A stretch of DNA of 64,000 bases from IMGVR_UViG_3300021520_000002:1-64000, one strand, 5' to 3'; positions 14,148 through 38,553 are shown, counted from the stretch's first letter. Program-made: numbers and translations. The notes: generated from the sequence alone by a model not told the origin.

Positions 14148-15839
14148 ATGATAAGAGAAATAAAAATAGATTTTTTAGAAAGAGTGAGAGTTGAAATTCT
14201 TGGAGAACCAGATGGTAATAAATATTTGGTAGAATTTATTAATCAAGATACTAGAATATTAGAATATTCAAGAGAGATGTATATTAATAATTGGGCAGTT
14301 TATATTAAATCATATTTTGTTAATTGGTTAATAAGAGTTACTGGACCAAATTATAAATATGAATATAAATATGATTGTACTGATAAAAAAGTAGTTGTTT
14401 ATTTTTCAGGTACAGGATTAGGTGATGCAATTGCTTGGTTACCAGCTTGTGTGGAATTTGTTAAGAAACATAATTGTAATTTATATGTTATGACAAATTG
14501 GGCAAAATTATTTAGTAAAGTTTATCCTGAAATCAACTTTGTAAATTTTGCCGATACAACAAATGAATATGCTCGATATAGAATTAATCTTTATCATAAT
14601 GATAAGAATAGAAATCACCAACCAAATGATTGGAGAACAATTCCTTTACAACAAATATCATCTGATATTCTTGGAATAGAATATAAAGAATCTGCTCCTA
14701 AAATAGATGTTAGTAATATAAAAACTTCTATGGTAAAAAGACCAAAAAAATATGTTTGTATATCTGAACATACTGCTTTAGGTTATTGTAAGTTATGGCA
14801 TTATCCAGGAGGATGGCAAGAAGTTGTTGATTATTTAATATCTAAAGATTATGAGGTTGTTGTTATAAGTACAGAACCAACTAAATTAGTTAATGTAATT
14901 GATATGACAAACAATTCTATTGAAGTTACTATGGGATTGTTAATGAATTGTGAGTTTTATATTGGAGTAGCATCTGGTTTAGCTTGGTTATCATGGACTT
15001 TAGGTAAGAGAGTTATTATGTTTTCTGGATTCAGTTTACCGTGGTGTGAGTTTCAAACAAACAACTATAGAATTTCTGGTGTAGGAAATTGTGTAGGTTG
15101 TTTACATGATGTATTTATCGACACATCCAGGTGGAACTCAAACTGTCCCAGAAACCAAGATAACACTTGTACTAAACAAATAACACCAAAGATGGTAACT
15201 AATATGATTGATAGATTGGTTCCATCAATAAACATTCCAATAAGTTCATTTCAAGGAGATTATGTGTTTGAAACTACAAAGGCAAATAAAAGAAGACAAA
15301 AGATAGAATTATTTCATAGAATTTTTAAAGGAAAAGGAATTGATATTGGTGCTGGTCAAGATAATGTAAATAAAGATAATATTTTTAAAGATGTTGAGTA
15401 TTGTGAGAGTTTTGATGTTGGACATGGAGATGCTCAATATATAAATTCTTATAAGCCAGAAAATTTTTATGATTTTGTACATAGTTCACATTGTTTAGAA
15501 CATATGGTTGATCCTTTTGAAGCTATTAAAAATTGGTTTTCTTTAGTTAAACCAGGTGGTTATTTAGTAGTTACAGTTCCAGATGAAGATTTATATGAAC
15601 AAGGATATTGGCCATCAAAGTTTTCAACATGTCACAATTGGACTATGACAATTAATAAAGAAAAATCATGGAGTCCAAAATCAGTTAATGTTTTAGGACT
15701 AATTCAATCTCTTGAAAAATATGAAATTATTAAAATTGAATTAGTTGATGTGAATTATAATTATTCTTTAAAGAATTTCGATCAATGTTTAAATGAAGCA
15801 GAATGTTGTGTTGAATTTATAATTCGTAAAAAAGAATAA
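14148..15839 (+). CDS. Aah/TibC-like (BAHT, GT9-related) glycosyltransferase fused to a C-terminal SAM methyltransferase
   Basis: GLGDAIAWLP, KLWHYPGGWQ, YIGVASGLAWLSW, SGFSLPWCEF, CxxC...CP...CT iron-finger cysteines; then IDIGAG...HSSHCLEH...KPGG. Confidence 0.75.
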   Translation: MIREIKIDFLERVRVEILGEPDGNKYLVEFINQDTRILEYSREMYINNWAVYIKSYFVNWLIRVTGPNYKYEYKYDCTDKKVVVYFSGTGLGDAIAWLPACVEFVKKHNCNLYVMTNWAKLFSKVYPEINFVNFADTTNEYARYRINLYHNDKNRNHQPNDWRTIPLQQISSDILGIEYKESAPKIDVSNIKTSMVKRPKKYVCISEHTALGYCKLWHYPGGWQEVVDYLISKDYEVVVISTEPTKLVNVIDMTNNSIEVTMGLLMNCEFYIGVASGLAWLSWTLGKRVIMFSGFSLPWCEFQTNNYRISGVGNCVGCLHDVFIDTSRWNSNCPRNQDNTCTKQITPKMVTNMIDRLVPSINIPISSFQGDYVFETTKANKRRQKIELFHRIFKGKGIDIGAGQDNVNKDNIFKDVEYCESFDVGHGDAQYINSYKPENFYDFVHSSHCLEHMVDPFEAIKNWFSLVKPGGYLVVTVPDEDLYEQGYWPSKFSTCHNWTMTINKEKSWSPKSVNVLGLIQSLEKYEIIKIELVDVNYNYSLKNFDQCLNEAECCVEFIIRKKE

Positions 15840-15855
15840 ATTTTAAGAGGATGAT

Positions 15856-16551
15856 ATGATGTCTGTAATGTACTTATTTGAAGGTAAACCAGATAATCCA
15901 AACAGTGTAATTCTGTTGAATGAATACTATCCTAAAGGATTAACTCAACAACAAATCTATGATTATTACATGAATAATAAGAATAAGGTTCTCAATCAAG
16001 TTAAGAATAGAGAAGTGATGTTCTTTTTTGCAGTATCAAAGAATCAATTTATTGTTCGAAGAAAAGCTGCTGATGAATATTATAAACTTACTCCTGAGAA
16101 CTATGAAGACATGATTAATGGAAGAGTTGTATCAATTCATTCAACAATGAGTTCAAATGAAGAGTTTGGTATTATTGATATTGATTTTCATATTTTTGAT
16201 CAATGTAAGAAAGCTGCCGCTGAAATATATGATTATTTATTTAAGTTTTATAATAAGAATCTACAAATAAGATATACAGGTAAACAATCATTTCATATTG
16301 TTTATAATTTTAATAGATCATATAGAATTGAAACTGTTAAAGATTATTTGAAAGATGCTTTACATGGGCTTAATAAACAATATATTATTGGCGGCAAAAG
16401 ATCTGAAGAAAAAATAAATCTTGATCTTTCAAGTAATAAATATCGTGGTGGTTTTATTACTTTAAATTCATTATCAATAAATGGACTAAGATGTATGGAA
16501 ATAAAAAGAGAAGACTTAGACAAGTTTGTACAGAATCAGGCAAGAATCTAA
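15856..16551 (+). CDS. LigD-type primase-polymerase (AEP) domain protein with MxS leader
   Basis: LTQQQIYDYY, IIDID (DxD), YTGKQSFHI (motif II), INLD. Starts MMSVMYLFE. Confidence 0.65.
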   Translation: MMSVMYLFEGKPDNPNSVILLNEYYPKGLTQQQIYDYYMNNKNKVLNQVKNREVMFFFAVSKNQFIVRRKAADEYYKLTPENYEDMINGRVVSIHSTMSSNEEFGIIDIDFHIFDQCKKAAAEIYDYLFKFYNKNLQIRYTGKQSFHIVYNFNRSYRIETVKDYLKDALHGLNKQYIIGGKRSEEKINLDLSSNKYRGGFITLNSLSINGLRCMEIKREDLDKFVQNQARI

Positions 16552-16563
16552 GTTGGGGGTTTT

Positions 16564-16797
16564 ATGGTGTCTATATCTAATTTATTCGAAATCAATTTAA
16601 AATATGTGCCGATAGAAAAACAGAAAATGGGTGTAAGTGATAATTTTAAACATTATCTTGAAAGACTTAAATCAGATAGAGAAAAGATATTAGGTAAATC
16701 AGAAAGTGAAAATATTAATCCATTAAGACAATTTGGAAAAACAGAAACTGTAAATAGCAATCCAAATCCAATGAAACAGTTTGGGGTAGAAATATGA
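16564..16797 (+). CDS. MIS-leader family small protein
   Basis: Starts MVSISNLFE. Confidence 0.6.
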   Translation: MVSISNLFEINLKYVPIEKQKMGVSDNFKHYLERLKSDREKILGKSESENINPLRQFGKTETVNSNPNPMKQFGVEI

Positions 16798-17051
16798 TTA
16801 GTATAATTAATTTATTTGAAGAAATGAATATGGAAGTTCCTGGGAATTTTTCTGGAAGTGGAATAACCAGAGTAGTATCAAATAATAGTGGTGATGCACG
16901 AGAGGCAGAATTAGCAGCTTTCATGAAACGCCAAAGAGCAGCATTAAAAGAACAATCTGAATTACCACCAGGAGCAGAAAAAAGTCAAAAAAGACTTATG
17001 TTTAATCGTGGAGAAGAAATTAATGAGTTAGTAAGTAAATCAAAGAGGTAA
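16794..17051 (+). CDS. MIS-leader family small protein
   Basis: Starts MISIINLFE. Confidence 0.6.
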   Translation: MISIINLFEEMNMEVPGNFSGSGITRVVSNNSGDAREAELAAFMKRQRAALKEQSELPPGAEKSQKRLMFNRGEEINELVSKSKR

Positions 17052-17055
17052 TATT

Positions 17056-17247
17056 ATGATTAGTATTATATTTGAATTTAATTTTGATGATTTAAGTTTT
17101 GGTGGTGTCACTAGTAATGCTAAAAAATTAATAGCGGCAAAAACCGAACAAGATCAAAAACCAGGTTTACTTTCTAATATGTTAAAAAATAAAATTAAAG
17201 CAGGTATAGAAAATAAAATTAATACTTTAACTACAAAACCAATGTAA
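17056..17247 (+). CDS. MIS-leader family small protein
   Basis: Starts MISIIFE. Confidence 0.6.
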   Translation: MISIIFEFNFDDLSFGGVTSNAKKLIAAKTEQDQKPGLLSNMLKNKIKAGIENKINTLTTKPM

Positions 17248-17257
17248 GGGGTAAACT

Positions 17258-17464
17258 ATGATTAGTATTGTTGAAATGTTTAATACATCACCACAAGCTC
17301 TTTCCGATAAATGGAAATATTATAATAATGAAGCACAGAAATCTGGTAATATTGATTTACAAAATAAAGCTCAGAAAGCAGCAGCTCTTTCTAATGCCTC
17401 TTTATATCCTACTGGTTCAATATCATGGAAAAAATATATGGATAGAGCTAAAGGAGTTAATTGA
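17258..17464 (+). CDS. MIS-leader family small protein
   Basis: Starts MISIVE. Confidence 0.6.
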   Translation: MISIVEMFNTSPQALSDKWKYYNNEAQKSGNIDLQNKAQKAAALSNASLYPTGSISWKKYMDRAKGVN

Positions 17465-17583
17465 TGTTATCTATTATTGATTTATTTGAAACTAAACAAG
17501 ATAAAAAGAAAGAAAAAGAATCTGATAAATCAAAAACTAAAAAATATGATGAAGAACATGAAGGAGATGAAGACGATGATTAG
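17464..17583 (+). CDS. MIS-leader family 39-aa peptide, absent from the ORF track
   Basis: AAGGAG RBS; TGATG coupling with the upstream stop; MLSIIDLFETKQDKKKEKESDKSKTKKYDEEHEGDEDDD. Confidence 0.6.
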   Translation: MLSIIDLFETKQDKKKEKESDKSKTKKYDEEHEGDEDDD

Positions 17584-18013: not shown

Positions 18014-18017
18014 TAGT

Positions 18018-19170: not shown

Positions 19171-19187
19171 AATGGAGAAAATAAATA

Positions 19188-19745: not shown

Positions 19746-19747
19746 TC

Positions 19748-19981: not shown

Positions 19982-19984
19982 AAA

Positions 19985-20959
19985 ATGAAAGATTTGATTT
20001 GGATTATTGATGCTTATATCAATACCGAAGAAAAAGAACAGATGACAATTGATTTGATTAAAAATTTAAGAACTAGAGATGGTGATATTGCTATAGTTTC
20101 ACATTTGCCGATATCTAAAACAATTCAAGAGATGGTTGATTATACAATTTATGATAAAAATAATTTATTCATTAATTGGGGACATGAAGTATTTTATATG
20201 TTTGATGATTTAAAAATATGTTTTAAAAAAAGAGATATTTATCATGGTCTAGCCATATATATGAATCGGAAAAATGCATGTGATTTATTTGCCGATAGAT
20301 ATAAACTTGGAAATTTTATTGAATATGATTTCAATATAAAATCTTTAACTGAATATATTGAAAAGACTAAAGACTTTCTTTTTAAATATGATGTGATTAG
20401 TAGACCATTTTATAGTGATCCGTCTGGAAAAACATCTGGAATTTTAACTGATCTTTATACTGTTAATTTATCTTGGGCTAATAAAATTTTACCTTATGTA
20501 GATACAGCAGAAGATTATATGAATTTACATTATGGTTATATGATTGAAAATTTACTTTATAATTTATTTTTAAAAGGTCAAGGAGAAATAAAATTTATAG
20601 AAATGGAAAGAATTATTAATAGTTGTTCTTCAGATAATGATAATAATCTTATTGTACTTTTGTGTGATACAATAGAAAGTAATATTATTGCTGCATTTAT
20701 TTTTAACCAATCAAATGAAGTAAAAGAATATTTTATAAACGATCAAAAACACATATTAGGTTCACAACAGTGGCATTGGTCTAGATTATCTCGAGAAAAT
20801 TTAAAAATAATAACAGATAATAAAGAATATATAATTGAACAAGATATAAAGTACAACAATTGTAGATTTATTTTTAGTAAAAGTAATATGATGGTTTGTC
20901 CTTATTGGACAGAAAGTGATAGTATATTTTTTGGATTAACAACTAAAATGGAGGCGTAA
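19985..20959 (+). CDS. Hypothetical protein, possible glycosyltransferase-like; paralog of the central domain of 21461..25276
   Basis: IIDAY...VSHLP...VDYTIYDKNN...YHGL...FIEYD aligns with IVDCY...TTHY...VDYVVYDKRN...YHSL...FIEYD. Confidence 0.55.
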   Translation: MKDLIWIIDAYINTEEKEQMTIDLIKNLRTRDGDIAIVSHLPISKTIQEMVDYTIYDKNNLFINWGHEVFYMFDDLKICFKKRDIYHGLAIYMNRKNACDLFADRYKLGNFIEYDFNIKSLTEYIEKTKDFLFKYDVISRPFYSDPSGKTSGILTDLYTVNLSWANKILPYVDTAEDYMNLHYGYMIENLLYNLFLKGQGEIKFIEMERIINSCSSDNDNNLIVLLCDTIESNIIAAFIFNQSNEVKEYFINDQKHILGSQQWHWSRLSRENLKIITDNKEYIIEQDIKYNNCRFIFSKSNMMVCPYWTESDSIFFGLTTKMEA

Positions 20960-21468
20960 TGGAAAATGTAGTAGAAAAAGAAAAGAAGTCAGTAGATTTT
21001 ATTTCAAGACAACAGAGACGTCAACAAGAAAGAGATCAAGAAAAGTATAATGAAGCAATGAGAAAACAGATGGCAGCAAATGCAACAAAAGGTGATTTGA
21101 TGATGTTGGTCCAATCATTTCAGAAACTGAGAGATAGATTGTTTCAGATGGATATTATTAATTCAGCTTTAGAAAAAATTATAATTAGTAAAGGACTTGC
21201 AACAAGAGATGAAATTAAAGAAGCTGTTGGTCAAGAAGCTAATAGAGCAGTAAAAATGAAAGAAGTATCTGAAGAAAAAGGAAATTATGAAAAGAGACTT
21301 GAAACATGTAAAGAATGGGATATAGTAGCTGATATGACTAATATTCCAATTCAAATTTTACAGGATAATTCTTTGACTGAAGTTCAGAAAAGAGAACTTG
21401 CTGAAAAATATGAATTACAAAGTGTTTTAGATAAATTAGACGGAAAAGAGGAAAATAAAAATGTTTGA
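20959..21468 (+). CDS. Hypothetical helical protein
   Basis: GGAGG RBS; charged, helical. Confidence 0.55.
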   Translation: MENVVEKEKKSVDFISRQQRRQQERDQEKYNEAMRKQMAANATKGDLMMLVQSFQKLRDRLFQMDIINSALEKIIISKGLATRDEIKEAVGQEANRAVKMKEVSEEKGNYEKRLETCKEWDIVADMTNIPIQILQDNSLTEVQKRELAEKYELQSVLDKLDGKEENKNV

Positions 21469-24400
21469 TTTAGTATTAGGAAATAGTAGCTATTTAGGAC
21501 ACACAGGCTACGCTCATCACTCAAGAGAATTTTTTACAAGATTAAGTAGAAGAGTTCCTGTTAGAATCAGAAATTTCGCATATGTTGAAAGTCTTGATTA
21601 TTTAACACAAGAACAAAAAGATTTAGTCATTCATCAGACTTGGAATCAACCACCTTATGAAGTTGGTAAACCATTTGAAAGAAATCCAAAAGATAAAATT
21701 GTGAATATTGTTCTTAATGAAACAAACCATTTTTATTTTTATGATAAGTATGAAGGTCCTAAAATAGCTTATAATGTTTGGGAAAGCACCATACAACCTT
21801 TCGGGTTTTTTAATAAGTTATTAGAATATGATCAATTGTGGGTACCTACAAAATGGCAAAGAGATTGTTCCATTGGACAAGGATTTCCAGCGGCAAGAGT
21901 TAAAATTGTTCCAGAAGGAATAGATGGAACAAAGTTCTGTCCTGGTGATAGTGATATATCTTTAACACAACTTAGAAAAGATGAATTTAATTTTACGTTA
22001 ATTGGTCGTTGGGATAATCGTAAATCAACAACTGAAATTATTAGAGCTTTTTTAAATGAATTTAAAGAAGATGAGCCAGTTAATTTATATCTTCATGTTG
22101 ATAATCCTTGGGGCGAGAAAATAGATGGTTTTAAAACAACTGAAGAACGTATGAAACATTATGGATTTGATCCAGAATATAAAAGATTTGTTCTTATTAG
22201 AGGTCTTGAACGAGTTGAGAATGATGATCTTTATATTAATTATCTTCGTAATGCTAATTGTTTTATAAGTTGTGCCAAAGCTGAAGGATGGAATATTCCT
22301 TTAATTCAAGCAATATGTTGTGGAACACCAACTATATCTTCTAATTATGGAGCACAATTAGATTTTGCCGATCAAGTATCCCATCTTGTAAATATAAAAA
22401 GATATGTAAAACCATATAAAGTTTTTATGCAAGATGATAATACTCCTGGAGTTGTTGCTGAACCAGATTATGAACATCTTCAACAAGTAATGAGAGACGT
22501 TTATAATAATTATAAAGAGTATAAGGAAATTGCATTAAATGATTCTATAACTATTAGAGAAAAATTTGATTGGGAAAAAGCTGTAGATAAAGCAATGCCA
22601 GCTTTGGAAGAACTTTATCAAAGATATTACCCACCAAGAGTAAGACTCAATCTTGGTTCTGGTAATTTTATAAAAGATGGATATATTAATATTGATGAAT
22701 TTGTTGAATCAGAAGATATTAGAAAAATGAGTATGCTCAGTTTAGATTTTGCCGATAATAGTGTTGATGAAGTATATACTTCCCATTCTTTGGAACATTT
22801 TGGTAAAGATGGAGTAAATCAAGTTCTTAAAGAATGTAATCGGGTATTAAAACCAAATGGAATTATTGTAATTGAAGTTCCTAATCTTGAAAGTGTTTTA
22901 CAACATTGGTTGAATACAAAAGAAGAAGATAGATGGGGATTTCCTTTAGATACTATTTTTGGTATGCAAACTACTCCTGGTGAATATCATAAAACAGGAT
23001 TTACAAAACAACGTTTATCTGAAGTGGTTAAACAAGCTGGATTTGAAGTTGATGAAATTAAAGACATAGATAGTCATGCTCAAGAATGTATTTTATTAAC
23101 TGCTCATAAAATTAATATTAGAGAAAACAGTGTAGTTATTGTTGATTGCTATCCAGATAATGAATTGAAACAAAATTTATTAATTAAACAAATTCAATAT
23201 CTTAAACAATTCGGTATGCCAATTTTATTAACTACTCACTATTCAGGATTATCAAAAGAAATTATTGAATTAGTTGATTATGTTGTTTATGATAAAAGAA
23301 ATATTATGAGTGAAGATAGTTTAGGATATTTCTTTGTTCAAGAAAAATTTATTAAAGTTAAAAGTGTAATTTCGAAAAAATACCATTCTTTAACTGTTCA
23401 TATGAATCTTAAGAATGCTTTAACGTTTTGTAGAAACAAATTTAAATATGCACATTTTATAGAATATGATGTTAATGTAGATTTTTCGAGACATTTAGAA
23501 GTTGTTGAAAAGTCTTTATTAGAATCTAAATTTTGTGCATACTCATATGATGAAGAAATGGAAAATCTTAAAAAAGTATCTCAAAATAAAGATATTAGTG
23601 GAATAGTTACTAATCTTTTATCTTTTAATGTTGATTGGTTAGATGATAATTTTATTAATATTGATAATTGGAATTCATATAAACAAATAGCTTATGCATC
23701 ATCGATAAAAAATCATAAATTTGCAGATCTGATTTATGAAAATTGGTTATATGATTATTTTAAAGCAGGAGATTTATTTAAAAATATTAAGCTTTTTGAT
23801 AGAGATTTGAAAAATGAAATAATAAAAGAAAGAAGTGTAGTATCTTCTGAAATGTTTGATAACAAAATTGTTTTTCTCACATCAGAAACAGATCAACACG
23901 AAGTTATTCTATTTGTAATAAATCATTTTTCAGATCATGAAGTTGATTATAAATTTATTTGTAATGATCATACTAGTGAAGGTAAAATACCTACAAACGG
24001 TTTAGCATATTATGTTGCTAATAAAATTGATAAAGTTAGAGTTATAATTGATGGAAGAGTTGAAGATCTATCTTTTGATTTTGCAAAATTATATGCTGAA
24101 ACTAGATTTAAATTTGGTGATGATAGATTTAAATGTTTTGTGTGGACAGATGATGATGATGATGGTTTTACTCCTGGAAGGGAAAAGAAAGTTGCCGATG
24201 TTAGATTCCATTATGTTGATGGGGCTTTTGTTGAATTACTTGGAAAAAGTTCTGATGAAAAATTATTTGAGGTTGAGTTTTCTGATCAAGATGAAAATAA
24301 AAAATTATACTCAACTAGATTATCACCGAACATGTGGTCAAAATCTGACTATAAATACTTTATAAATTGGAAAACCCTTGTAAAATATAAGAATGATGTT

Positions 24401-29124: not shown

Positions 29125-30006
29125 ATGGATGACGAAAGAATTTATATTGGACGAGGAATGGGTACAAGTGGAACATCAGGAATAGGTGTAAGTGGTTCTA
29201 GTGGAACATCTGGAACAACACCCCCTGGATTAACTTCAGGTACAGATGGAACAAGTGGTTCGAGTGGAACAACAGGAAGTTCAGGTACAAGTGGTTCAAG
29301 TGGAACGTCTGGGTCTGGCACTTCGGGTAGTTCTGGAACATCTGGTGTAGCTGGAACATCTGGAACAACCCCTCCTGGATTAACTTCAGGAACAGATGGA
29401 ACAAGTGGTTCTAATGGCACATCAGGTTCTTCTGGAACAAGTGGAGCAGCTGGTACTGCTGGATCAAGTGGAACAAGTGGTGTAAATGGAACATCTGGAA
29501 CAACCCCTCCTGGATTAACTTCAGGTACAGATGGTACTTCTGGAACTTCTGGTGTAGATGGAACAAGTGGAACTTCTGGTGTATCTGGTTCAAGTGGAAC
29601 TTCTGGTGTATCTGGTTCAAGTGGAACATCAGGAAGTTCAGGAACAACTGGTTCATCTGGAACATCTGGAACATCAGGTTCTGGAACAAGTGGAACATCT
29701 GTAGCTTTTAGTTTAAATTATTTTGATTATAATCAAACAGTTACTGATGACGGTTCATTTGATCTTCCAGCAATTACTAATATTGGTAATGGTTGGATTG
29801 TGGCTGGTCAGAATCAGGAAAGAAGTTGGTTTATAGTTGGACCTGTTGGAACAGTTACTTTGATAAATAATACAACTAATGTTGTTGCTGGTGAAGATAC
29901 TAATAATAAATTATGTATTGGAACTGCAGTAGTTCAAGAACCCGTAACTATTAAAAATCGTTTAGGTTCATCAATGAATGTAATGTTACAGATGTGGTAT
30001 GATTAA
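29125..30006 (+). CDS. Gly/Ser/Thr-repeat fibre protein
   Basis: About 180 aa of G-x-x repeats with three TTPPGLTSGTDG kinks, then a globular C-terminus. Confidence 0.7.
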   Translation: MDDERIYIGRGMGTSGTSGIGVSGSSGTSGTTPPGLTSGTDGTSGSSGTTGSSGTSGSSGTSGSGTSGSSGTSGVAGTSGTTPPGLTSGTDGTSGSNGTSGSSGTSGAAGTAGSSGTSGVNGTSGTTPPGLTSGTDGTSGTSGVDGTSGTSGVSGSSGTSGVSGSSGTSGSSGTTGSSGTSGTSGSGTSGTSVAFSLNYFDYNQTVTDDGSFDLPAITNIGNGWIVAGQNQERSWFIVGPVGTVTLINNTTNVVAGEDTNNKLCIGTAVVQEPVTIKNRLGSSMNVMLQMWYD

Positions 30007-30041: not shown

Positions 30042-31286
30042 ATGAATTTACCACCTTATGGAGATGATAGTAAGAGAAATTTTGCTCATTTTGGTACTCT
30101 TAAAGTAAGCTCACAAGACATACCAAATATGACTATAAAAATATCACCTGGTGGGTTCTGGTATTATACAAGTACTGGACCAATTTATGTTGAATTTGCT
30201 GGTGGTAATTCACCAACAATAACTAAACCGGGTACTAATGCTAAATGGGTAATAATAGCACTAAATTCTAGTGCTCAAATTGTTTTAATTGATGGTTCGA
30301 TTAGTGCACATCCTCAGGTACCAACAATTCCTAGAGGAAGAGTAATTCTTGCCGCTGTTTATGTTCAATCATCAACAACAGAAATTACTAATGATATGAT
30401 TTTTGATACAAGAGCATTGTTTGCTCAGTTTCCAACAGATCATAGAGATTTAGCTGGAACAACTGAAACTGGTTCACATCCAGTTTCATCGATTTCTGGA
30501 TTACAAACTATTTTAGATGATTTAGTTACAGAAGAAGACTTAACTACAGGTTTAGCAACAAAAGCAAATCAAACTGGTACTAATGAGTCTTCTTTTATTT
30601 TAAATGAAGATTTTCTTGGTACTCCTGCTTCTGATGTTAGTTTAATGGTTGAAAGAGGTAGTGAGAGTAATGTTGGTATAAAGTGGAATGAAACTTTAGA
30701 TCAATGGCAAGTAACTTCAGATGGTAGTATATGGAATACATTTGGTTCTGTTTCTACTAGTGGTGTGTCTGGTAGTTCAGGTACATCTGGCACAAGTGGA
30801 AGTGGCACAAGTGGAACTTCAGGTTCTGGAACAAGTGGTTCAAGTGGAACCTCTGGAATAGCTGGTTCTTCAGGAACTTCTGGAGCAGATGGAACTTCAG
30901 GTTCTTCAGGAACATCTGGAATAAATGGTTCTTCAGGCACTTCTGGTGTATCAGGTAGTAGTGGAACTTCTGGAAGTTCAGGTTTATCAGGTTCTGATGG
31001 AACAAGTGGGTCGAGTGGGTCGAATGGAACTTCAGGTTCTTCAGGTACATCAGGAGTAGATGGAACATCAGGTTCTTCAGGAACTTCTGGAGCAGATGGA
31101 ACAGCTGGTAGTTCTGGAACAAGTGGAGCAGATGGAACTTCAGGTTCTTCAGGAACGAGTGGAACATCTGGAACTGGTTGGAGTGGAACATGTTATGTTG
31201 GTAATACTTCAGGCACTTCAGCAGAACTTAATTATTATTTAACAATTAGTAATGGGATAGTTACTAATTTTGTTGGACCAGTGTAA
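30042..31286 (+). CDS. MNxPPYG-domain fibre paralog 1 with GST repeats
   Basis: Shared N-terminal domain; ERG...W...W module; GST repeats. Confidence 0.7.
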   Translation: MNLPPYGDDSKRNFAHFGTLKVSSQDIPNMTIKISPGGFWYYTSTGPIYVEFAGGNSPTITKPGTNAKWVIIALNSSAQIVLIDGSISAHPQVPTIPRGRVILAAVYVQSSTTEITNDMIFDTRALFAQFPTDHRDLAGTTETGSHPVSSISGLQTILDDLVTEEDLTTGLATKANQTGTNESSFILNEDFLGTPASDVSLMVERGSESNVGIKWNETLDQWQVTSDGSIWNTFGSVSTSGVSGSSGTSGTSGSGTSGTSGSGTSGSSGTSGIAGSSGTSGADGTSGSSGTSGINGSSGTSGVSGSSGTSGSSGLSGSDGTSGSSGSNGTSGSSGTSGVDGTSGSSGTSGADGTAGSSGTSGADGTSGSSGTSGTSGTGWSGTCYVGNTSGTSAELNYYLTISNGIVTNFVGPV

Positions 31287-31360: not shown

Positions 31361-34021
31361 ATGAATGTGCCGCCCTATGGAAATGATTTAAAAAATGCAT
31401 TTGCTCATTTTGGTGTTCTTAGAGTGACTGCTCAAGATCCACCAAATATGACCGTGAAAATTTCACCAGGTGGATTTTGGTATTATGTAAGTACTGGACC
31501 TGTTTATGTTGAATTTGCCGGTGGAGATTCACCAATAATAACAACATCTATGGATAATTCATATTGGGTTTTAATTACAATAAGTCCAGAAGGTTTAATA
31601 ATTTTAGTTGAAGGAGAACATGCGGTAGAACCTGTGTTGCCTTATGTTCCTCGAGGAAGAGTAATTCTTGCCGCTATTTATGTTCAATTTGATATACATA
31701 CAATTACTGATGATATGATTTTTGATACGAGAACACTGTTCACTCAATATCCAACGGATCATAGAGATTTAACCGGAACATCTGAAATTAATATACATTC
31801 AATTTCATCAATTTCTGGATTACAAACAGCTCTTAATGATAAAGTAGATGTTGATGATTTAAGTGTTTTATTATTAACTAAAGCTGATATATTTGGTACT
31901 CCTAATATTGTTTTTAAATTTAATCAAGATTTTACCGGCACACCAACTGATAATATTATATTAGAAGTTGAAAGAGGAACGGAATCAAATGCTGCTATAA
32001 GATGGAATGAAACATCAAAAATGTGGGAACATTCAAAAGATAGTATTATTTGGCAAGGTATTGGAACATCTGGTGTTTCTGGAACATCAGGAACAAGCGG
32101 TACATCAGCAAGTTCTGGAACATCTGGAACAACTGGAACCTCGGGTTCTAGTGGAACATCAGCAACTGGTGGATCTTCTGGAACAAGTGGAACTTCATTT
32201 TATGGAGTAACATCTGGAACCTCTGGAAGTGCAGGAACATCAGGTAGTTCAAGTACATCTGGAACATCTGGAAGTGCAGGAACATCTGGAAGTTCTGGAA
32301 CATCTGGAAGTTCTGGAACATCAGGTTCATCTGGTAGTTCTGGTTCATCAGGAAGTTCAGGTAGTAGTGGAACATCACCTCCTGGATTCACTTCTGGAAC
32401 ATCAGGAAGTTCTGGAACATCAGGAAGTTCTGGAACAAGTGGATCGGGTGGTACTTCTGGTAGTTCTAGTACAAGTGGTTCATCAGGAACATCTGGAAGT
32501 TCTGGTTCAAGTGGAAGTTCTGGAATATCTGGGAGTTCTGGATCATCAGGAAGATCTGGAACAAGTGGGTCGAGTGGTACAGCTGGTAGTTCTGGTACAA
32601 GTGGAAGTGCAGGAACTTCAGGTTCTGATGGTACTTCTGGAAGTTCTGGTACAAGTGGGTCGAGTGGAACATCAGGAAGTTCTGGTTCAAGTGGTTCTGA
32701 TGGAACATCTGGTAGTTCTGGTTTTGATGGTACCTCAGGATCTTCTGGAACAAGTGGGTCGAGTGGAAGTTCAGGTTCAAGTGGAAGTTCTGGTTCTTCT
32801 GGAACATCTGGAAGCTCTGGTACAAGTGGTAGTAGTGGAACATCAGGGAGCTCTGGAAGTTCAGGTTCTTCAGGCACAAGTGGTGATGGTTTTTATTGGG
32901 TTGGTGCTTGGACACTTACTGATCATTATGATATAGATGATATAGTTGAAAATGATGGTAATTCATATGTTTGTAAATTAGCAAATACTGCAGATGCAAA
33001 TAATGAACCAGGTGTTGGTGGAAGTTGGGCAACATATTGGGATTTATTTACACAAGGTGGTACAGGAACATCTGGTACTTCAGGTAGTTCTGGAACAAGT
33101 GGGTCAAGTGGAACAACAGGTAGTTCTGGAACAAGTGGGTCGAGTGGAACAACAGGTAGTTCTGGAACAAGTGGAAGTAGTGGTACATCTGGAAGTTCAA
33201 GTACAAGTGGTAGTAGTGGAACATCTGGAACTTCAGGTTCTGATGGTACCTCTGGAAGTTCTGGTACAAGTGGATCGAGTGGAACATCTGGGTCTTCAGG
33301 TACTGCTGGAAGTTCTGGTACATCCCCTCCTGGTTTAACATCAGGTACAGATGGAACATCAGGAAGTTCTGGTACAAGTGGAAGTAGTGGAACATCAGGA
33401 AGTTCTGGTACAAGTGGTATAGATGGTACATCTGGAAGTTCTGGAACAAGTGGATCGAGTGGCACATCTGGAAGTTCTGGAACAAGTGGATCATCTGGTA
33501 GTTCTGGTTCTTCTGGAACAAGTGGTATAAATGGAACGTCTGGGTCTTCAGGTACTGCTGGTAGTTCTGGAACATCCCCTCCTGGTTTAACATCAGGTAC
33601 TGATGGCACATCAGGTAGTTCTGGTACAAGCGGAAGTAGTGGTACATCAGGAAGTTCTGGAACTTCAGGTTCTGGAACAAGTGGGTCTTCAGGTGATGGA
33701 ACATTATCAGTATATACAAAAGGAACAAGTGGTACATTATCAGCTGATGAAGTTAAAGGAACGCTTATAAAAATAACAGCAGCTATAACTTTAACATTAC
33801 CTGCTGGTTCTTCAGGATATAATTCAATTTTTTATAGTAGTACCTCTGCTGCTGTATCAGTAGATCCAAACAGTAGTGAAGTTATGGTTTTAAATGGGGT
33901 ACCTTTAACTGGTGGATATAAAGTTACAAGTCCTGGAACAAGAGGAGATACATTAACTGTTGCTCATGATGGAACTAACTGGCTTTGTTTAGGTGCAAGT
34001 AACTGGACTAGTGGAGGATAA
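31361..34021 (+). CDS. MNxPPYG-domain fibre paralog 2 with long GST repeats and an internal CBM5/12-like module
   Basis: Two GST tracts flank WVGAW...YDIDDIVENDGNSYVC...PG...YWDL. Confidence 0.7.
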   Translation: MNVPPYGNDLKNAFAHFGVLRVTAQDPPNMTVKISPGGFWYYVSTGPVYVEFAGGDSPIITTSMDNSYWVLITISPEGLIILVEGEHAVEPVLPYVPRGRVILAAIYVQFDIHTITDDMIFDTRTLFTQYPTDHRDLTGTSEINIHSISSISGLQTALNDKVDVDDLSVLLLTKADIFGTPNIVFKFNQDFTGTPTDNIILEVERGTESNAAIRWNETSKMWEHSKDSIIWQGIGTSGVSGTSGTSGTSASSGTSGTTGTSGSSGTSATGGSSGTSGTSFYGVTSGTSGSAGTSGSSSTSGTSGSAGTSGSSGTSGSSGTSGSSGSSGSSGSSGSSGTSPPGFTSGTSGSSGTSGSSGTSGSGGTSGSSSTSGSSGTSGSSGSSGSSGISGSSGSSGRSGTSGSSGTAGSSGTSGSAGTSGSDGTSGSSGTSGSSGTSGSSGSSGSDGTSGSSGFDGTSGSSGTSGSSGSSGSSGSSGSSGTSGSSGTSGSSGTSGSSGSSGSSGTSGDGFYWVGAWTLTDHYDIDDIVENDGNSYVCKLANTADANNEPGVGGSWATYWDLFTQGGTGTSGTSGSSGTSGSSGTTGSSGTSGSSGTTGSSGTSGSSGTSGSSSTSGSSGTSGTSGSDGTSGSSGTSGSSGTSGSSGTAGSSGTSPPGLTSGTDGTSGSSGTSGSSGTSGSSGTSGIDGTSGSSGTSGSSGTSGSSGTSGSSGSSGSSGTSGINGTSGSSGTAGSSGTSPPGLTSGTDGTSGSSGTSGSSGTSGSSGTSGSGTSGSSGDGTLSVYTKGTSGTLSADEVKGTLIKITAAITLTLPAGSSGYNSIFYSSTSAAVSVDPNSSEVMVLNGVPLTGGYKVTSPGTRGDTLTVAHDGTNWLCLGASNWTSGG

Positions 34022-34508: not shown

Positions 34509-36839
34509 ATGAATGTACCACCTTATGGAAATAATTATAAAAAAATGGGTGCATATTTTTCAAACTTACAGGTAACATCTAGATCTACACCTGATATGAC
34601 AGTAAAAGTTTTACCAGGTGGTTTTTGGAGACATACGGTCAATGGACCAGTTTATGTTGAATGTGTTGGAGGTTATTCAACAACAATCACAGCACCTGTT
34701 AGTTATTCAAAATGGGTAATGATTACTCTTAATGAAAGTGGACAAATTGTTCTTTTAGATGGGGCATCTGCTAGCAATCCAGATTTACCAACTGTTCCAC
34801 GTGGTAGGATGACTTTAGCTGTTATTCGTATAAATTCAACAACAACTGAAATCAATGATGATATGATTTATGATCTTAGACCTTTGTTTGCACAGTATCC
34901 AACAGATTATCGGGATTTAACTGCTCCTGATGAGTCTACTTATAATCCAACTTCAGGATCGTCAGGAAGTTCTGGAACATCAGGTAGATCAGGAACGAGT
35001 GGATATTCTGGATTAAGTGGCACATCTGGTAGTTCTGGTTCTTCTGGAACATCTGGAAGCTCTGGTACAAGTGGGTCGAGTGGAACATCAGGTTCTTCAG
35101 GAACATCAGGTTCTTCTGGAACAAGTGGTTCAAGTGGTTCTTCAGGAAGTTCAGGTACATCTGGAAGTTCAAGTACATCAGGTTCTTCAGGAACATCAGG
35201 TTCTTCTGGAACAAGCGGAAGTTCTGGTTCAAGTGGTTCTGATGGTACTTCAGGAAGTTCAGGAACATCAGGTTCTTCAAGTACATCAGGAAGTTCTGGA
35301 ACAAGTGGAACATCAGGTTCTTCAGGTTCTTCAGGTTCTGATGGAACAAGTGGTTCTTCTGGAACGAGTGGGTCGAGTGGTACATCTGGAAGTTCTGGAA
35401 CAAGTGGAAGTAGTGGAACTTCAGGTTCTGATGGTACTTCAGGTAGTTCTGGAACAAGTGGAAGTAGTGGAACTTCAGGAACAGATGGAACAAGTGGTTC
35501 TAGTGGAACATCAGGTTCTTCAGGAACAAGTGGTATAGATGGTTCTTCAGGAACAAGTGGAAGTTCAAGCACATCTGGAAGTTCTGGAACAAGTGGAACA
35601 GATGGAACAAGTGGTACAGATGGAACAAGCGGTTCTAGTGGAACATCAGGAAGTTCTGGAACAAGTGGTTCATCAGGCACTTCAGGGTCAAGTGGACTTG
35701 CTGGTGGAACTTCTGGATATTTAGCTGTTTGGTCTGGAGATGATTCGATAGAGAATTCGGGAATATTTAGAAGTGTTGAAAAATATTTTATAGGTACTAG
35801 TGGTATTAATACAAAATTAACTATTGGTTTAACTATTAATCAAGATAATAGTGATGATGAAATAATTTCTTTAAAATCATCTGATGTTTCTCATGCAATG
35901 ACTGGTGTTACTGAAACTGATACATATGGATGTTTTGGTAAAAGTGTTCATGATAAAGGAGGTTTATCAGTTCAAGGTTTTACTGAAAGTATTATTGGAC
36001 TTACTCTTTATGGATATGCAGCTACATCTGCAACAAATGCATCTCAAGCACCAATAGTACTTAATGCTTATGAAACTGGTACTAGAGGATGGTTTAATGC
36101 AACAGATAATCTTATTTTATTTATAAATGGTGGTAGTGCAGCTAGTAGAATTATGGGAGATGGTAGTTATTTTATCAATGAAAGCATCAATACAAAACAA
36201 AATATGGGTATTACAATTAATCAATATACTTATGATACTGAATATATTTCTCTTAAACAAAATTTTACTCATGGAATGTCAAATATTACAGAAACTGATA
36301 CATATGGAATTATGAGAGAAGTTTTGATAGACCATGGTGGATTAGATATTAAAGGTTTATCAGATCAAATTAAAGGTGTTCAAATTAATGGATATGCTGG
36401 CACATCTGGCACATCTACTGCAACAACATCCGAATCTACTATTTATGTTAATGCTTATTTAAAAAATAGTACTACTTCAGGTTCTCATGGAACTGATGCT
36501 AATTTATTTGCTGTTGCAAATAATAGTGATGTTCAATTTATAGTTAAAGGAAATGGTGATATATTTTATAATGGTACATCTGGAACACCATTTGATGATT
36601 ATCAAGATGCTTTAGCGTGTCAAGATCTTTCTTATAACTTAAGTAGTGAATATGGTAAAATACTCATGTATAATAAAGAACAATTTGTTCAAATGGGTGT
36701 TATGACTGAAGATGGATTTGTTAGTAGAAAGAATATGGATATGTTACAGCTTGGTGCTGTAGGTGAATTATATCGAGTGTGTTTGACGTTATGTGATGAA
36801 CTTGGTATATCATTTGATGATGCTAAAAAAATGAATTAA
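34509..36839 (+). CDS. MNxPPYG-domain fibre paralog 3 with GST repeats and a duplicated C-terminal beta domain
   Basis: NTK..G.TINQ...D.E.ISLK...H.M...TETDTYG occurs twice. The C-terminal helical segment (FDDYQDAL...LQLGAVGELY) could be an intramolecular chaperone. Confidence 0.7.
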   Translation: MNVPPYGNNYKKMGAYFSNLQVTSRSTPDMTVKVLPGGFWRHTVNGPVYVECVGGYSTTITAPVSYSKWVMITLNESGQIVLLDGASASNPDLPTVPRGRMTLAVIRINSTTTEINDDMIYDLRPLFAQYPTDYRDLTAPDESTYNPTSGSSGSSGTSGRSGTSGYSGLSGTSGSSGSSGTSGSSGTSGSSGTSGSSGTSGSSGTSGSSGSSGSSGTSGSSSTSGSSGTSGSSGTSGSSGSSGSDGTSGSSGTSGSSSTSGSSGTSGTSGSSGSSGSDGTSGSSGTSGSSGTSGSSGTSGSSGTSGSDGTSGSSGTSGSSGTSGTDGTSGSSGTSGSSGTSGIDGSSGTSGSSSTSGSSGTSGTDGTSGTDGTSGSSGTSGSSGTSGSSGTSGSSGLAGGTSGYLAVWSGDDSIENSGIFRSVEKYFIGTSGINTKLTIGLTINQDNSDDEIISLKSSDVSHAMTGVTETDTYGCFGKSVHDKGGLSVQGFTESIIGLTLYGYAATSATNASQAPIVLNAYETGTRGWFNATDNLILFINGGSAASRIMGDGSYFINESINTKQNMGITINQYTYDTEYISLKQNFTHGMSNITETDTYGIMREVLIDHGGLDIKGLSDQIKGVQINGYAGTSGTSTATTSESTIYVNAYLKNSTTSGSHGTDANLFAVANNSDVQFIVKGNGDIFYNGTSGTPFDDYQDALACQDLSYNLSSEYGKILMYNKEQFVQMGVMTEDGFVSRKNMDMLQLGAVGELYRVCLTLCDELGISFDDAKKMN

Positions 36840-36846
36840 AAAGAAG

Positions 36847-36879
36847 ATCGGCAAGATTTAGAAATTAGATCTTGCCGAT
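36847..36879. terminator. Hairpin built from paired TTGCCGAT motifs
   Basis: ATCGGCAAGAT...ATCTTGCCGAT, intergenic. Confidence 0.65.
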
Positions 36880-36900
36880 AATTTAGTTGGAGGTAATTTA

Positions 36901-38553
36901 ATGAAGGTACCACCTTATGGAGATGATAACAAACGAATAGGTGCCTACTTTTCTAATTTACAAGTTAAGGCTCAAATTATACCAGATATGACCGTGTATA
37001 TCTCTTCTGGTGGATTCTGGTACTATACTAGTACTAGTCCAATTTATGTTGAATATGTTGGTGGTAGTTCACCTGAAATTAGTTGCCCTTTTGCTAATTC
37101 AAAATTTGTAGTAATAACAATTAGTGAAATGGGAGAAATTGTACTTATAGATGGGGATTCAAATGCTACACCAGTATTACCATCAATTCCACGTGGTAGA
37201 ATGATATTGGCAGTTGTTGAAATCAATTCGTCAACAATTAAAATAACAGATGATATGATTTTTGATACAAGAACTTTATTTGCTCAATTTCCAACTGATT
37301 ATAGAGATATATCTTCAGCGTTTTATGGTACTAATGGAACTTCTGGTACTTCTGGTTCATCAGGAAGTTCAGGTACTGGTGGAACTTCTGGTTCTTCAGG
37401 TAGAGCTGGATTTAGTGGTAGTAGTGGAACTAGTGGAACTTCTAGTACAAGTGGAAGTTCTGGAACATCTGGAACATCTGGAACATCTGGAACATCTGGA
37501 AGTAGTGGAACATCTGGATCATCTGGAACAAGTGGATTTGGAATAACTGGTACTGGTGGAACTTCAGGAAGTAGTGGAACATCAGGAACATCAGGTATTT
37601 CTTTTTATGGAGTAACATCTGGATCATCTGGAAGTTCTGGAACAAGTGGTAGTTCTAGTACTAGTGGAACTTCAGGAACTAGTGGAACTTCAGGAACTAG
37701 TGGAACTTCAGGAACATCTGGAACTTCAGGAACATCTGGAAGTAGCGGTTCTTCAGGAACATCAGCAACTAGTGTAACATCAGGTTCATCTGGAATAAGT
37801 GGTACAGCTGGTTCATCGGGAAGTTCTGGTTCAAGTGGATCGAGTGGAACAACAGGAAGTTCAGGTTCTAGTGGAACTTCAGCAACTTCTATAACTTCTG
37901 GAAGTAGTGGAACTTCGGGTAGTTCTGGTTCGAGTGGAAGTAGTGGAACATCTGGAAGTTCTGGAACAGGTGGATCTTCAGGTTCATCTGGAAGTTCAGG
38001 AACAGGTGGTTCATCTGGAAGTTCAGGAACAGGTGGTTCATCTGGAAGTTCAGGAACAGGTGGTTCATCTGGAAGTTCAGGAACAGGTGGTTCATCTGGA
38101 AGTTCTGGTTCTGATGGTAGTTCTGGATCAAGTGGTTCTTCTGGAAGTTCTGGATCTGGTGGGACATCTGGTTCATCTGGAACATCAGGTTCTAGTGGAC
38201 CTGCTGGAACAAGTGGATCGAGTGGAACATCTGCAACTTTAGGAACAAGTGGTGTTTTTGGAGCTTGGTCAACAGCTGGAGAATATGGAGCAGGAACTAG
38301 TTATCAAGCATCTGTTGATGGATTTGTACTTGTTCATCTTGCTGGGGGTGCTGGGGTATCATCTATTGGTTATACAGATTCTGCTGATCCACCAACAGTT
38401 ATAAGAGCAAGTGCTGGATGTGATGTTGTAAATGGAGGAGATTATAGTGTACATGTATATTATAATTCTTTTACCATGCCTGTTAAAAAAGGAGATTATT
38501 GGAAAGTTAGTGCTGCAACTCAATTATATTGGCTACCACTAATGAGTATTTAA
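36901..38553 (+). CDS. MNxPPYG-domain fibre paralog 4 with GST repeats
   Basis: Shared N-terminal domain; C-terminal YQASVDGFV...FTMPVKKGDYWKV domain. Confidence 0.7.
   Translation: MKVPPYGDDNKRIGAYFSNLQVKAQIIPDMTVYISSGGFWYYTSTSPIYVEYVGGSSPEISCPFANSKFVVITISEMGEIVLIDGDSNATPVLPSIPRGRMILAVVEINSSTIKITDDMIFDTRTLFAQFPTDYRDISSAFYGTNGTSGTSGSSGSSGTGGTSGSSGRAGFSGSSGTSGTSSTSGSSGTSGTSGTSGTSGSSGTSGSSGTSGFGITGTGGTSGSSGTSGTSGISFYGVTSGSSGSSGTSGSSSTSGTSGTSGTSGTSGTSGTSGTSGTSGSSGSSGTSATSVTSGSSGISGTAGSSGSSGSSGSSGTTGSSGSSGTSATSITSGSSGTSGSSGSSGSSGTSGSSGTGGSSGSSGSSGTGGSSGSSGTGGSSGSSGTGGSSGSSGTGGSSGSSGSDGSSGSSGSSGSSGSGGTSGSSGTSGSSGPAGTSGSSGTSATLGTSGVFGAWSTAGEYGAGTSYQASVDGFVLVHLAGGAGVSSIGYTDSADPPTVIRASAGCDVVNGGDYSVHVYYNSFTMPVKKGDYWKVSAATQLYWLPLMSI

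Follow-up and report, generated by a model that had tools for sequence, protein, structure and literature searches.

Why would a freshwater jumbo phage carry two genes resembling bacterial autotransporter heptosyltransferases (BAHT; the TibC/Aah family, TIGR04414) beside genes for collagen-like fibres rich in Ser and Thr? The locus lies in a 64,000-nucleotide stretch of contig IMGVR_UViG_3300021520_000002 (positions 1-64000), referred to here as the window. A sequence-only reading had suggested that the phage uses these transferases to build a mucin-like, possibly O-methylated glycan coat on its fibres from host nucleotide sugars. This suggestion was examined by profile and structure searches of the window, and by comparison with related loci in phages and bacteria.

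Transferase and fibre genes in the window

The genes considered to belong to the putative system are as follows.

1..568 (+), 3' end of a G-x-x fibre gene cut by the contig end, its frame-1 translation being almost wholly GSS/GTS/GAA triplets; proposed acceptor
12753..13337 (+), stand-alone SAM-dependent methyltransferase (Methyltransf_24, E=8.9e-10), one gene upstream of the first BAHT gene; candidate glycan O-methyltransferase, its role in the system being inferred only
14148..15839 (+), BAHT-methyltransferase fusion: TibC/Aah-type O-glycosyltransferase at residues 4-356 (nt 14157-15215) and SAM methyltransferase at residues 392-487 (nt 15321-15608; Methyltransf_23, E=2e-12)
19985..20959 (+), predicted GT-A-fold glycosyltransferase (GT8/glycogenin-like, WavE-like)
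20959..21468 (+), 169-aa ORF of unknown function, overlapping its upstream neighbour by 1 nt and its downstream neighbour by 8 nt
21461..25276 (+), four-domain enzyme of 1271 aa: GT4 at residues about 79-385 (nt 21695-22615), SAM methyltransferase (Methyltransf_11/25) at residues about 386-545 (nt 22616-23095), a GT-A domain paralogous to ORF 19985 at residues about 567-777 (within nt 23117-24148), and BAHT at residues 911-1268 (nt 24191-25264)
29125..30006 (+), collagen-like fibre protein with 45 G-x-x triplets; proposed acceptor
30042..31286 (+), collagen-like fibre protein with 44 triplets, sharing an N-terminal domain of about 140 aa with the next three fibres; proposed acceptor
31361..34021 (+), collagen-like fibre protein with 141 triplets in two blocks separated by a weak CBM_5_12-like insert; proposed acceptor
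34509..36839 (+), collagen-like fibre protein with 81 triplets and a non-repeat C-terminal part of about 375 aa; proposed acceptor
36901..38553 (+), collagen-like fibre protein with 88 triplets; proposed acceptor

Both BAHT domains score above the curated TIGR04414 cut-off of 200 bits, with 215.2 bits for ORF 14148 and 264.6 bits for ORF 21461, and a phmmer search of the PDB with ORF 14148 gave TibC (4RAP) at E=3e-35. An AF2 model of the ORF 21461 domain (pLDDT 93.5) shows strands over residues 3-88 followed by a Rossmann-like core, matching the N-terminal flattened beta-barrel and GT-B catalytic domain of the TibC protomer. In a Foldseek comparison the model superposes on TibC at TM 0.90/0.85 with an rmsd of 2.6 A, as compared with TM 0.5-0.55 for the LPS heptosyltransferases WaaF and WaaC. 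In a 130-sequence alignment, the catalytic base Asp110 is present in 130 of 130 sequences, and both window domains retain Lys230, Trp305 and, in a C-x2-C...C...C tail, the four Cys that align with iron-finger residues Cys339, 342, 358 and 370 of TibC (residue roles from PMC4358343). Thr226 is present in ORF 21461 but is Ala in ORF 14148, with Thr one position earlier; ORF 14148 also sits on a long branch in the tree.

Two features of TibC are not retained. Arg286, which contacts adenine N1 in TibC, is Ser in ORF 21461 and Thr in ORF 14148; Arg is found at this position in 31 of 32 canonical BAHTs but in only 34 of 98 members of the clade that includes the window's enzymes. In addition, the region equivalent to TibC 255-280, which forms the beta-hairpin thumb needed for the TibC dodecamer, is 16-17 residues in the window's domains as compared with 26 in canonical BAHTs, and no hairpin appears in the AF2 model. 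Donor choice and quaternary structure may therefore differ from those of TibC, and a dodecamer is doubtful.

The sequence-only reading was correct in identifying the BAHT, methyltransferase and GT4 domains and the fibre genes, but it missed the two GT-A-fold domains. The AF2 model of ORF 19985 has a pLDDT of 76, and Foldseek finds glycogenin, the LH3 glycosyltransferase domain and heparosan synthase at E about 6e-6 to 4e-5, although TM is only 0.3-0.4; a WavE lead from the ESM Atlas is also weak. Homologous domains occur in 23 other viral BAHT loci, often fused to the BAHT, making this domain a recurrent partner. In contrast, ORF 20959 has no Pfam, NCBIfam or PHROG hit and no homologue in the other BAHT loci, and its membership in the system rests on position only. 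Four small metatranscriptome contigs lie on ORF 21461.

Moreover, the interval is not one uninterrupted glycosylation operon. Unrelated genes lie between and beside the two BAHT genes, including an SLT-like lytic transglycosylase (13303), a LigD PrimPol-like gene (15856), a LigD 3'-phosphoesterase (17477), a pyruvoyl arginine decarboxylase (18700) and an HNH endonuclease (19188). The nearest G-x-x gene starts 3.8 kb after ORF 21461, and ORF 14148 is 13 kb from it. Baseplate and fibre genes flank the cluster.

The six fibre ORFs hold about 450 G-x-x triplets, mostly GSS and GTS; the counts listed above are for runs of 5 or more triplets, and runs extend to 46. Pfam Collagen E-values range from 1e-16 to 1e-50. 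Unlike collagens with Pro/Hyp-rich X and Y positions, these repeats have Pro at about 0% of X/Y positions and 2-3% of all residues. While the repeats may form triple helices, they could also be extended mucin-like linkers.

Association of BAHT genes with G-[T/S]-S repeat proteins

The sequence-only reading had stated that a lack of co-occurrence between BAHT genes and GST-repeat proteins across phages would refute the proposed glycosylation system. The comparison came out strongly in favour of an association. Of 84 BAHT-centred viral loci, 49 hold a Ser/Thr-rich G-x-x ORF, as compared with 0 of 118 random viral pieces (Fisher p=2e-24, not corrected for relatedness). The fraction rises to 29 of 33 where 5 kb or more is visible on both sides, and to 19 of 21 with 7 kb or more. 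The repeat ORF lies within 300 bp of the BAHT ORF in 9 loci and within 1 kb in 16. Because the loci are phylogenetically related, the p-values overstate independence; nonetheless, the association holds in 15 of 23 lineages clustered at 50% identity. In the reverse direction, 8 of 107 short G-x-x pieces hold a BAHT, as compared with 0 of 118 random pieces. The remaining 99 of 107 showed no BAHT in the few kb visible, so not every such fibre needs one nearby.

Additional evidence came from the phylogeny of the enzymes. One clade (SH-aLRT 100, stem length 0.69) holds all viral BAHTs together with bacterial ones, and a repeat ORF is present for 64 of 98 members inside the clade and 1 of 32 outside. 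The in-clade bacterial genes are flanked by small signal-peptide or lipobox proteins made of (GSS)n/(GTS)n. The only element that these proteins share with the phage fibres is the repeat: the 99 repeat ORFs fall into 38 groups by their non-repeat parts, while the Y position is Ser in 71% (viral) and 67% (bacterial) of triplets. Outside the clade, 7 of 7 tested BAHT genes are followed by AIDA-repeat proteins, whereas no AIDA or autotransporter domain was found in any scanned ORF of the window.

The most recurrent neighbours in the related viral loci are tail sheath, tail tube and GT4 genes, so the cassette lies in the virion module. An isolated phage, Microcystis phage Mel-JY01, has the same order, with a G-x-x ORF, then a structural protein, then a GT4...BAHT fusion. 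Evidence regarding the sugar donor is indirect. Split hldE-like adenylyltransferase and kinase genes, associated with ADP-heptose synthesis, directly follow the BAHT gene in three viral loci (designated L005, L070 and L195), and none occurs in random pieces. BAHTs with Ser or Val at position 286 are among those followed by hldE-like genes (L005 and L070), so the loss of Arg286 does not exclude use of ADP-heptose. No sugar-nucleotide genes were found in the roughly 43 window ORFs scanned, which fits supply by the host, although 220 kb of the contig was not visible.

Proposed function and alternative models

Together, these data support a model, to which a probability of roughly 0.65 can be assigned, in which ORF 14148 and ORF 21461 encode cytoplasmic protein O-glycosyltransferases of a distinct BAHT branch whose acceptor is the repeat G-[T/S]-S rather than an AIDA-type beta-helix. 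During late infection, the BAHT domains would transfer a sugar, most probably heptose from ADP-heptose supplied by the host, onto Ser/Thr hydroxyls of the several hundred GSS/GTS triplets in the five or six collagen-like fibre proteins, five of which are encoded 4-13 kb downstream. The fused and neighbouring GT4 and GT-A domains would then add further sugars, and the methyltransferases may modify the glycan. While family membership, conserved catalytic residues, gene order and the cross-genome association are well supported, the acceptor, the donor, and the extension and methylation of the glycan are inferred; no biochemical or mass-spectrometric evidence exists for any member of this clade, as far as the searchable literature shows.

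An alternative, though unlikely, model is that the transferases remodel the host envelope (LPS core or O-chain, or a host surface protein) to block superinfection or mask receptors, and sit among fibre genes only because that region is hypervariable. This is how glycosyltransferases and rfaE in the host-recognition cluster of pelagimyophages and cyanomyophages have been interpreted (PMC7029224). In its favour, GT9 relatives are LPS heptosyltransferases, and GT4, GT8-like, weak GT25-like and WavE-like neighbours belong to families typical of LPS synthesis. However, the window's domains are TibC-type, with the N-terminal beta-barrel and iron finger, and all characterised BAHTs act on proteins (PMC4358343). 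Moreover, envelope remodelling does not explain the conserved, often adjacent pairing with G-[T/S]-S proteins in bacteria as well as phages, or the switch of neighbour type between clades.

It is also possible, but less likely still, that the enzymes glycosylate other virion proteins and the G-x-x fibres are bystanders. The 872-aa fibre ORF 25352-27970 lies directly after ORF 21461 and, like BAHT substrates, is highly repetitive, with tandem repeats of about 24 and 15 aa; sheath, tube or capsid subunits are further candidates, given the frequency of sheath and tube neighbours and the precedent of capsid and tail-tube glycosylation in mycobacteriophages (Freeman et al. 2023, Cell Host Microbe). 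Nonetheless, ORF 25352 has no homologue in the other BAHT loci, and sheath and tube genes are absent from the bacterial loci where the pairing with G-[T/S]-S proteins persists. Least likely is that the co-localisation has no functional meaning, with two abundant gene types of aquatic phages happening to share a variable structural region, or that the BAHT domains are inactive relics. The many short G-x-x pieces without a BAHT are consistent with this view, but it is difficult to reconcile with the absence of either gene type from the 118 random pieces, the loci in which the two genes are adjacent, the invariant catalytic Asp and near-invariant Lys, Trp and Cys residues, and the persistence of the pairing across about 40% sequence identity and in bacteria.

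Relationship to known glycosylation systems

The window's enzymes share with TibC (4RAP/4RB4; PMC4358343) the features described above, and ADP-heptose synthesis genes are linked to the BAHT gene in some relatives. They differ in forming a separate clade, in the presumed acceptor, in the loss of Arg286 (as in about two thirds of the clade), in the shortened thumb, in frequent fusions to GT4, GT-A and methyltransferase domains, and in being carried by phages. In mycobacteriophages, phage-encoded glycosyltransferases likewise lie next to structural genes and are thought or shown to decorate virion proteins inside the infected cell, but the enzyme families differ and the acceptors are the C-termini of capsid and tail-tube subunits; here the proposed acceptors are long fibre repeats, the initiating enzyme is a BAHT, and the hosts are Gram-negative or aquatic. 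O-glycosylation of Thr-rich G-x-y repeats probably has precedents in BclA of Bacillus anthracis, Riftia cuticle collagen and Mimivirus collagen, and in Riftia the sugar appears to substitute for hydroxyproline in stabilising the helix, although the transferases and sugars differ.

The proposed link between this BAHT clade and collagen-like repeats has, to the extent that the literature could be searched, no published description. Glycosyltransferases and rfaE/hldE genes interleaved with collagen-repeat tail-fibre genes are already known from aquatic myoviruses, where they were read as modifying the host O-chain (PMC7029224). The present data argue that at least the BAHT-containing cassettes act on the fibres themselves. 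The product would be a set of densely glycosylated, mucin-like or bottle-brush fibres on the virion, for which helix stabilisation, shielding or adhesion are possible, inferred benefits.

The transferases and their gene neighbourhood

The 64 kb belong to a 285,572-bp viral contig, IMGVR_UViG_3300021520_000002, with about 30% G+C in this portion and nearly all genes on the + strand. Near-identical DNA is present in at least nine lake or freshwater metagenome runs from several studies, but megablast of nt 14148-25276 found no relative among 50,697 deposited phage genomes (INPHARED). The window contains baseplate, fibre and virion genes, a UvsX-like recombinase and other phage genes. The sequence-only reading had proposed two Aah/TibC-like transferases, associated methyltransferase domains and a GT4 domain, and six Ser/Thr-rich G-x-x fibre ORFs. 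All of these are confirmed, and the features of the cluster are as follows.

12753: ORF with a methyltransferase domain
13303: SLT-like lysin
14148-15839: 563-aa ORF with a BAHT domain (TibC/Aah type) at residues 4-356 and a methyltransferase domain at residues 392-487
15856-16551 (+): LigD PrimPol-like archaeo-eukaryotic primase (structure-level match, TM 0.8-0.9)
17477-18013 (+): LigD 3'-phosphoesterase domain (E=3e-19)
18700-19170 (+): pyruvoyl-dependent arginine decarboxylase (E=5e-39), probably an auxiliary gene for polyamine synthesis
19188-19745: HNH endonuclease
19985-20959: predicted GT-A-fold glycosyltransferase
20959: ORF overlapping both of its neighbours
21461-25276: 1271-aa ORF with GT4 (residues about 79-385), methyltransferase (about 386-545), a domain paralogous to ORF 19985 (about 567-777) and BAHT (911-1268)
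25352-27970 (+): 872-aa fibre-like protein with about a dozen tandem copies of a unit of about 24 plus 15 residues rich in His, Thr and Tyr, and a BppL_N-like motif near the C-terminus
1-568: truncated G-x-x fibre ORF, accompanied elsewhere in the window by five complete ones

Evidence for the identity of the two transferases came from the NCBIfam model TIGR04414, "autotransporter strand-loop-strand O-heptosyltransferase", which has a curated cut-off of 200. ORF 14148 scores 215.2 bits against this model and ORF 21461 scores 264.6 bits. TibC (PDB 4RAP) is the only solved glycosyltransferase found by sequence, at E=3e-35. An AlphaFold2 model of the ORF 21461 domain (pLDDT 93.5) superposes on TibC at TM 0.90/0.85 and rmsd 2.6 A, whereas the LPS heptosyltransferases WaaF and WaaC reach only 0.5-0.55. 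Residue roles from the TibC structure paper (PMC4358343) were mapped onto a 130-sequence alignment, in which the catalytic base Asp110 is invariant. Lys230, Trp305 and the four iron-finger Cys (339, 342, 358, 370) are present in both window domains. Arg286, the adenine contact, is Ser in one domain and Thr in the other, and the beta-hairpin thumb region is 16-17 residues instead of 26. Interestingly, an in-clade BAHT from a Nisaea MAG (locus L329, 6328-7443) has all four iron-finger Cys replaced (Asn, Ile, Asn, Glu) while the catalytic Asp, Lys, Trp and even Arg286 are kept, making it a natural iron-finger-less variant. Four small metatranscriptome contigs of 170-292 nt lie on ORF 21461, but DNA carry-over is not excluded and this signal is not counted as proof of expression.

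The methyltransferase domains are where the sequence-only reading placed them, but that reading did not include the domains of ORF 19985 and the middle of ORF 21461, which are paralogous to each other. ORF 19985 models as a GT-A fold whose best matches are glycogenin, the LH3 glycosyltransferase domain and heparosan synthase, at E about 6e-6 to 4e-5, although TM is low at 0.3-0.4. The locus therefore encodes five glycosyltransferase domains and three methyltransferase domains. ORFs 19985, 20959 and 21461 overlap by 1 and 8 nt, so they are likely co-translated. The cluster is nevertheless interrupted by unrelated genes. ORFs 13303 and 15856 were examined as possible additional glycosylation genes and proved to be the SLT-like lysin and the LigD PrimPol-like protein; the latter and the LigD phosphoesterase at 17477 are NHEJ-type end-processing parts encoded as separate genes in a phage.

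The five complete fibre ORFs carry 45, 44, 141, 81 and 88 G-x-x triplets, and the truncated ORF is made almost wholly of such triplets. GSS and GTS dominate, Pro is nearly absent, and Pfam Collagen E-values go down to 1e-50. Four of the fibres share an N-terminal domain of about 140 aa. In the fibres at 29125-30006 and 31361-34021, the G-x-x runs are broken at intervals by a recurring motif, T-(T/S)-P-P-G-(L/F)-T-S-G-T-(D/S), which may introduce kinks or register shifts. Elsewhere in the window, a 919-aa protein at 7806-10565 (+) is made of about six PAS domains (PAS_9 E=8e-55) with no recognisable output domain, and sits among virion genes, which is unusual for a phage. Five tandem ORFs of 219-225 aa at 1563-4957 (+) look like paralogues by size and spacing, and the one scanned had no Pfam hit. 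A 237-aa ORF at 51672-52385 (+) has an asparagine-synthase-like domain (E=2e-17).

Association with G-[T/S]-S repeat proteins in phages and bacteria

Although tblastn found only 5 records in the INPHARED phage collection, a profile of 29 BAHT sequences found at least 592 viral stretches in IMG/VR that encode a relative, indicating that cultured phage collections under-represent the system. The 80 best stretches were retrieved with up to 10 kb on each side. Excluding the window's own contig, 49 of 84 loci contain an ORF with 8 or more G-x-x triplets in which at least half the X/Y residues are Ser or Thr, thresholds that were set for this analysis. GTS and GSS are almost always the commonest triplets, and Pro is about 0%. 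The loci are fragments, and many of the negative ones are simply short: the fraction is 29 of 33 with 5 kb or more visible on both sides, and 19 of 21 with 7 kb or more. In 9 loci the repeat ORF lies within 300 bp of the BAHT ORF, and in 16 within 1 kb. By contrast, a control of 118 viral pieces picked by an arbitrary 14-mer (0.99 Mb, 36.5% G+C) contains neither a Ser/Thr-rich G-x-x ORF nor a BAHT (Fisher p = 2e-24). While this p-value overstates independence because the sequences are related, 15 of 23 in-clade lineages still have the partner after clustering of the BAHT domains at 50% identity. In the reverse direction, 8 of 107 G-x-x pieces hold a BAHT, against 0 of 118 controls (p = 0.002). 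This test is weak and its result is a lower bound, since the pieces are uncentred and average only 8.5 kb, but it also shows that not every such fibre has a BAHT close by.

An independent context for the pairing came from bacteria, where the same profile finds at least 581 relatives. Among the 80 closest, 25 loci carry a Ser/Thr-rich G-x-x ORF. Almost all of these ORFs encode small proteins of about 110-320 aa directly flanking the BAHT gene, with a signal peptide or lipobox followed by (GSS)n or (GTS)n, and often a poly-Asp tail. They occur in Methylomicrobium and other Methylococcales, Arenicellales, Acidiferrobacterales and gammaproteobacterial MAGs. In five loci from Arenicellales and gammaproteobacterial MAGs (L338, L345, L348, L352 and L339), pairs or triplets of such lipobox proteins ending in poly-Asp tails flank the BAHT at about 8.5 kb and 11.2 kb, and some carry a CarboxypepD_reg-like domain. 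The bacterial proteins share nothing with the phage fibres except the repeat. The 99 repeat ORFs fall into 38 groups by their non-repeat parts, whereas the repeat itself is the same, with X = Thr or Ser and Y = Ser in 71% (viral) and 67% (bacterial) of triplets.

A maximum-likelihood tree was built from 130 BAHT domains dereplicated at 85% identity and rooted on an E. coli plasmid BAHT that precedes an AIDA-repeat protein. All 69 viral clusters and 29 bacterial ones fall in one clade (SH-aLRT 100, stem length 0.69). A G-[T/S]-S ORF is present for 64 of 98 members inside the clade and 1 of 32 outside. The tree is from a quick IQ-TREE search with SH-aLRT support only, and ORF 14148 sits on a long branch. 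The outside members come from Burkholderiaceae, Alphaproteobacteria, Lentisphaerota and others, and in 7 of 7 tested they are immediately followed by proteins with Pfam AIDA repeats, one of them with an autotransporter beta-domain. The neighbour type therefore changes exactly where the enzyme clade changes, as a change of acceptor predicts.

The most recurrent neighbours in the viral loci are tail sheath and gp19-like tail tube (25 BAHT lineages each), a protein of about 880 aa containing GT4 (21 lineages) and a 315-aa GT4 (18 lineages). A common cassette consists of a giant G-x-x ORF (up to about 500 triplets), then a protein of about 900 aa with GT4, the GT-A domain and a weak GT25-like region, then the BAHT. 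Fusions of the BAHT to methyltransferases (FkbM, Methyltransf_11) or to GT4 are frequent, and a PF11397 "GlcNAc" glycosyltransferase recurs near the cassette in locus L080 (3287-4531 (-), E=9e-72) and four other BAHT lineages. The isolated Microcystis phage Mel-JY01 (PP395634.1) has a stop-free + strand ORF at 2-3049 with 202 GSS/GTS-type triplets, followed by a "structural protein" and then a 1226-aa GT4...BAHT fusion. GenBank does not annotate this ORF as such, instead calling minus-strand CDSs at 1-651 and 739-2298 and a short + strand CDS at 2519-3052, probably a mis-annotation caused by the repeat.

Donor sugar and proposed mechanism

Indirect evidence on the donor came from tblastn with E. 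coli HldE, GmhA and GmhB. No homologue of hldE, gmhA or gmhB occurs in the 64-kb window, and no sugar-nucleotide gene appears in the roughly 43 window ORFs scanned with Pfam, although the other 220 kb of the contig was not visible. However, split hldE-like genes directly follow the BAHT gene in three of the loci: L005 (7552-9012), L070 (1326-2442) and L195 (3966-5089). These encode an adenylyltransferase of about 130 aa with the HxGH motif, followed by a kinase of about 244 aa, and in L195 they are followed by a 76-triplet G-x-x ORF. hldE-like kinase genes also lie near G-x-x ORFs in loci L142 and L175, and none occurs in the random control. The BAHTs of L005 and L070 have Ser and Val at position 286, so loss of the Arg is compatible with use of ADP-heptose. 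A "cytidylyltransferase-like protein" of Mel-JY01, tested as a possible RfaE domain II, gave only weak NMN-adenylyltransferase matches, far below their cut-offs. Pelagimyophage host-recognition clusters are also reported to carry rfaE (PMC7029224).

BAHTs act in the cytoplasm, and phage fibres fold and assemble there. In the most economical reading, the two BAHT domains initiate O-glycosylation, probably heptosylation from host ADP-heptose, on Ser/Thr of the G-[T/S]-S repeats; the GT4 and GT-A domains extend the glycan; and the methyltransferases cap it. While family membership, predicted fold, catalytic residues and synteny are consistent with this model, the acceptor, the donor, glycan extension, methylation and function are inferred. 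The repeats may form triple helices, which a sugar on Thr or Ser might stabilise, as is likely for Riftia collagen, or they may be extended mucin-like stalks.

Similar clusters have been interpreted as remodelling the host O-chain against co-infection (PMC7029224). This model fits the LPS-type accessory glycosyltransferases, but it does not fit the TibC-type architecture, the bacterial pairs or the neighbour switch between clades. Glycosylation of other virion proteins, such as ORF 25352, the sheath or the tube, is possible; however, ORF 25352 has no homologue in the other BAHT loci, and the bacterial loci lack sheath and tube genes. Chance co-localisation is contradicted by the random control and by the adjacency of the genes.

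Implications for phage and bacterial glycosylation

Automatic annotation already names these phage proteins as Aah/TibC-family, so the domain match itself is not new. What is new is the inferred acceptor class, the clade and the interpretation; full-text literature searches found no link between BAHT, TibC or heptosyltransferases and phages or collagen-like proteins. A broader proposal, which is about as likely as not (probability roughly 0.5), is that a large, unrecognised protein O-glycosylation system exists in which a dedicated branch of the TibC/Aah family recognises the minimal repeat G-[T/S]-S. This branch would build heptose-initiated, extended and methylated glycans on Pro-free collagen-like fibres of very many aquatic phages (at least 592 viral stretches), and would do the same on secreted lipoproteins of methanotrophs, Arenicellales and other Gram-negative bacteria. 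Such a system would be a viral and bacterial counterpart of collagen or mucin glycosylation. The pair is carried by an isolated phage, Mel-JY01, and by cultivable methanotrophs, making the question directly testable.

BAHTs are known only as modifiers of virulence autotransporters, and virion glycosylation by phage enzymes is established only for mycobacteriophages. If the inference holds, a second and far more widespread kind of phage glycosylation exists, on receptor-binding fibres, and BAHTs have a second acceptor class defined by a three-residue repeat, which would be a convenient tag for glyco-engineering. It would also provide a concrete explanation for how Pro-free G-S-S/G-T-S "collagens", which are extremely common in aquatic viral metagenomes, could be stabilised or shielded. 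Moreover, it would offer a testable alternative to the long-standing view that glycosyltransferase and rfaE genes in cyanophage and pelagiphage fibre clusters remodel host LPS, re-assigning the "LPS genes" of phage host-recognition clusters from host-surface remodelling to virion decoration.
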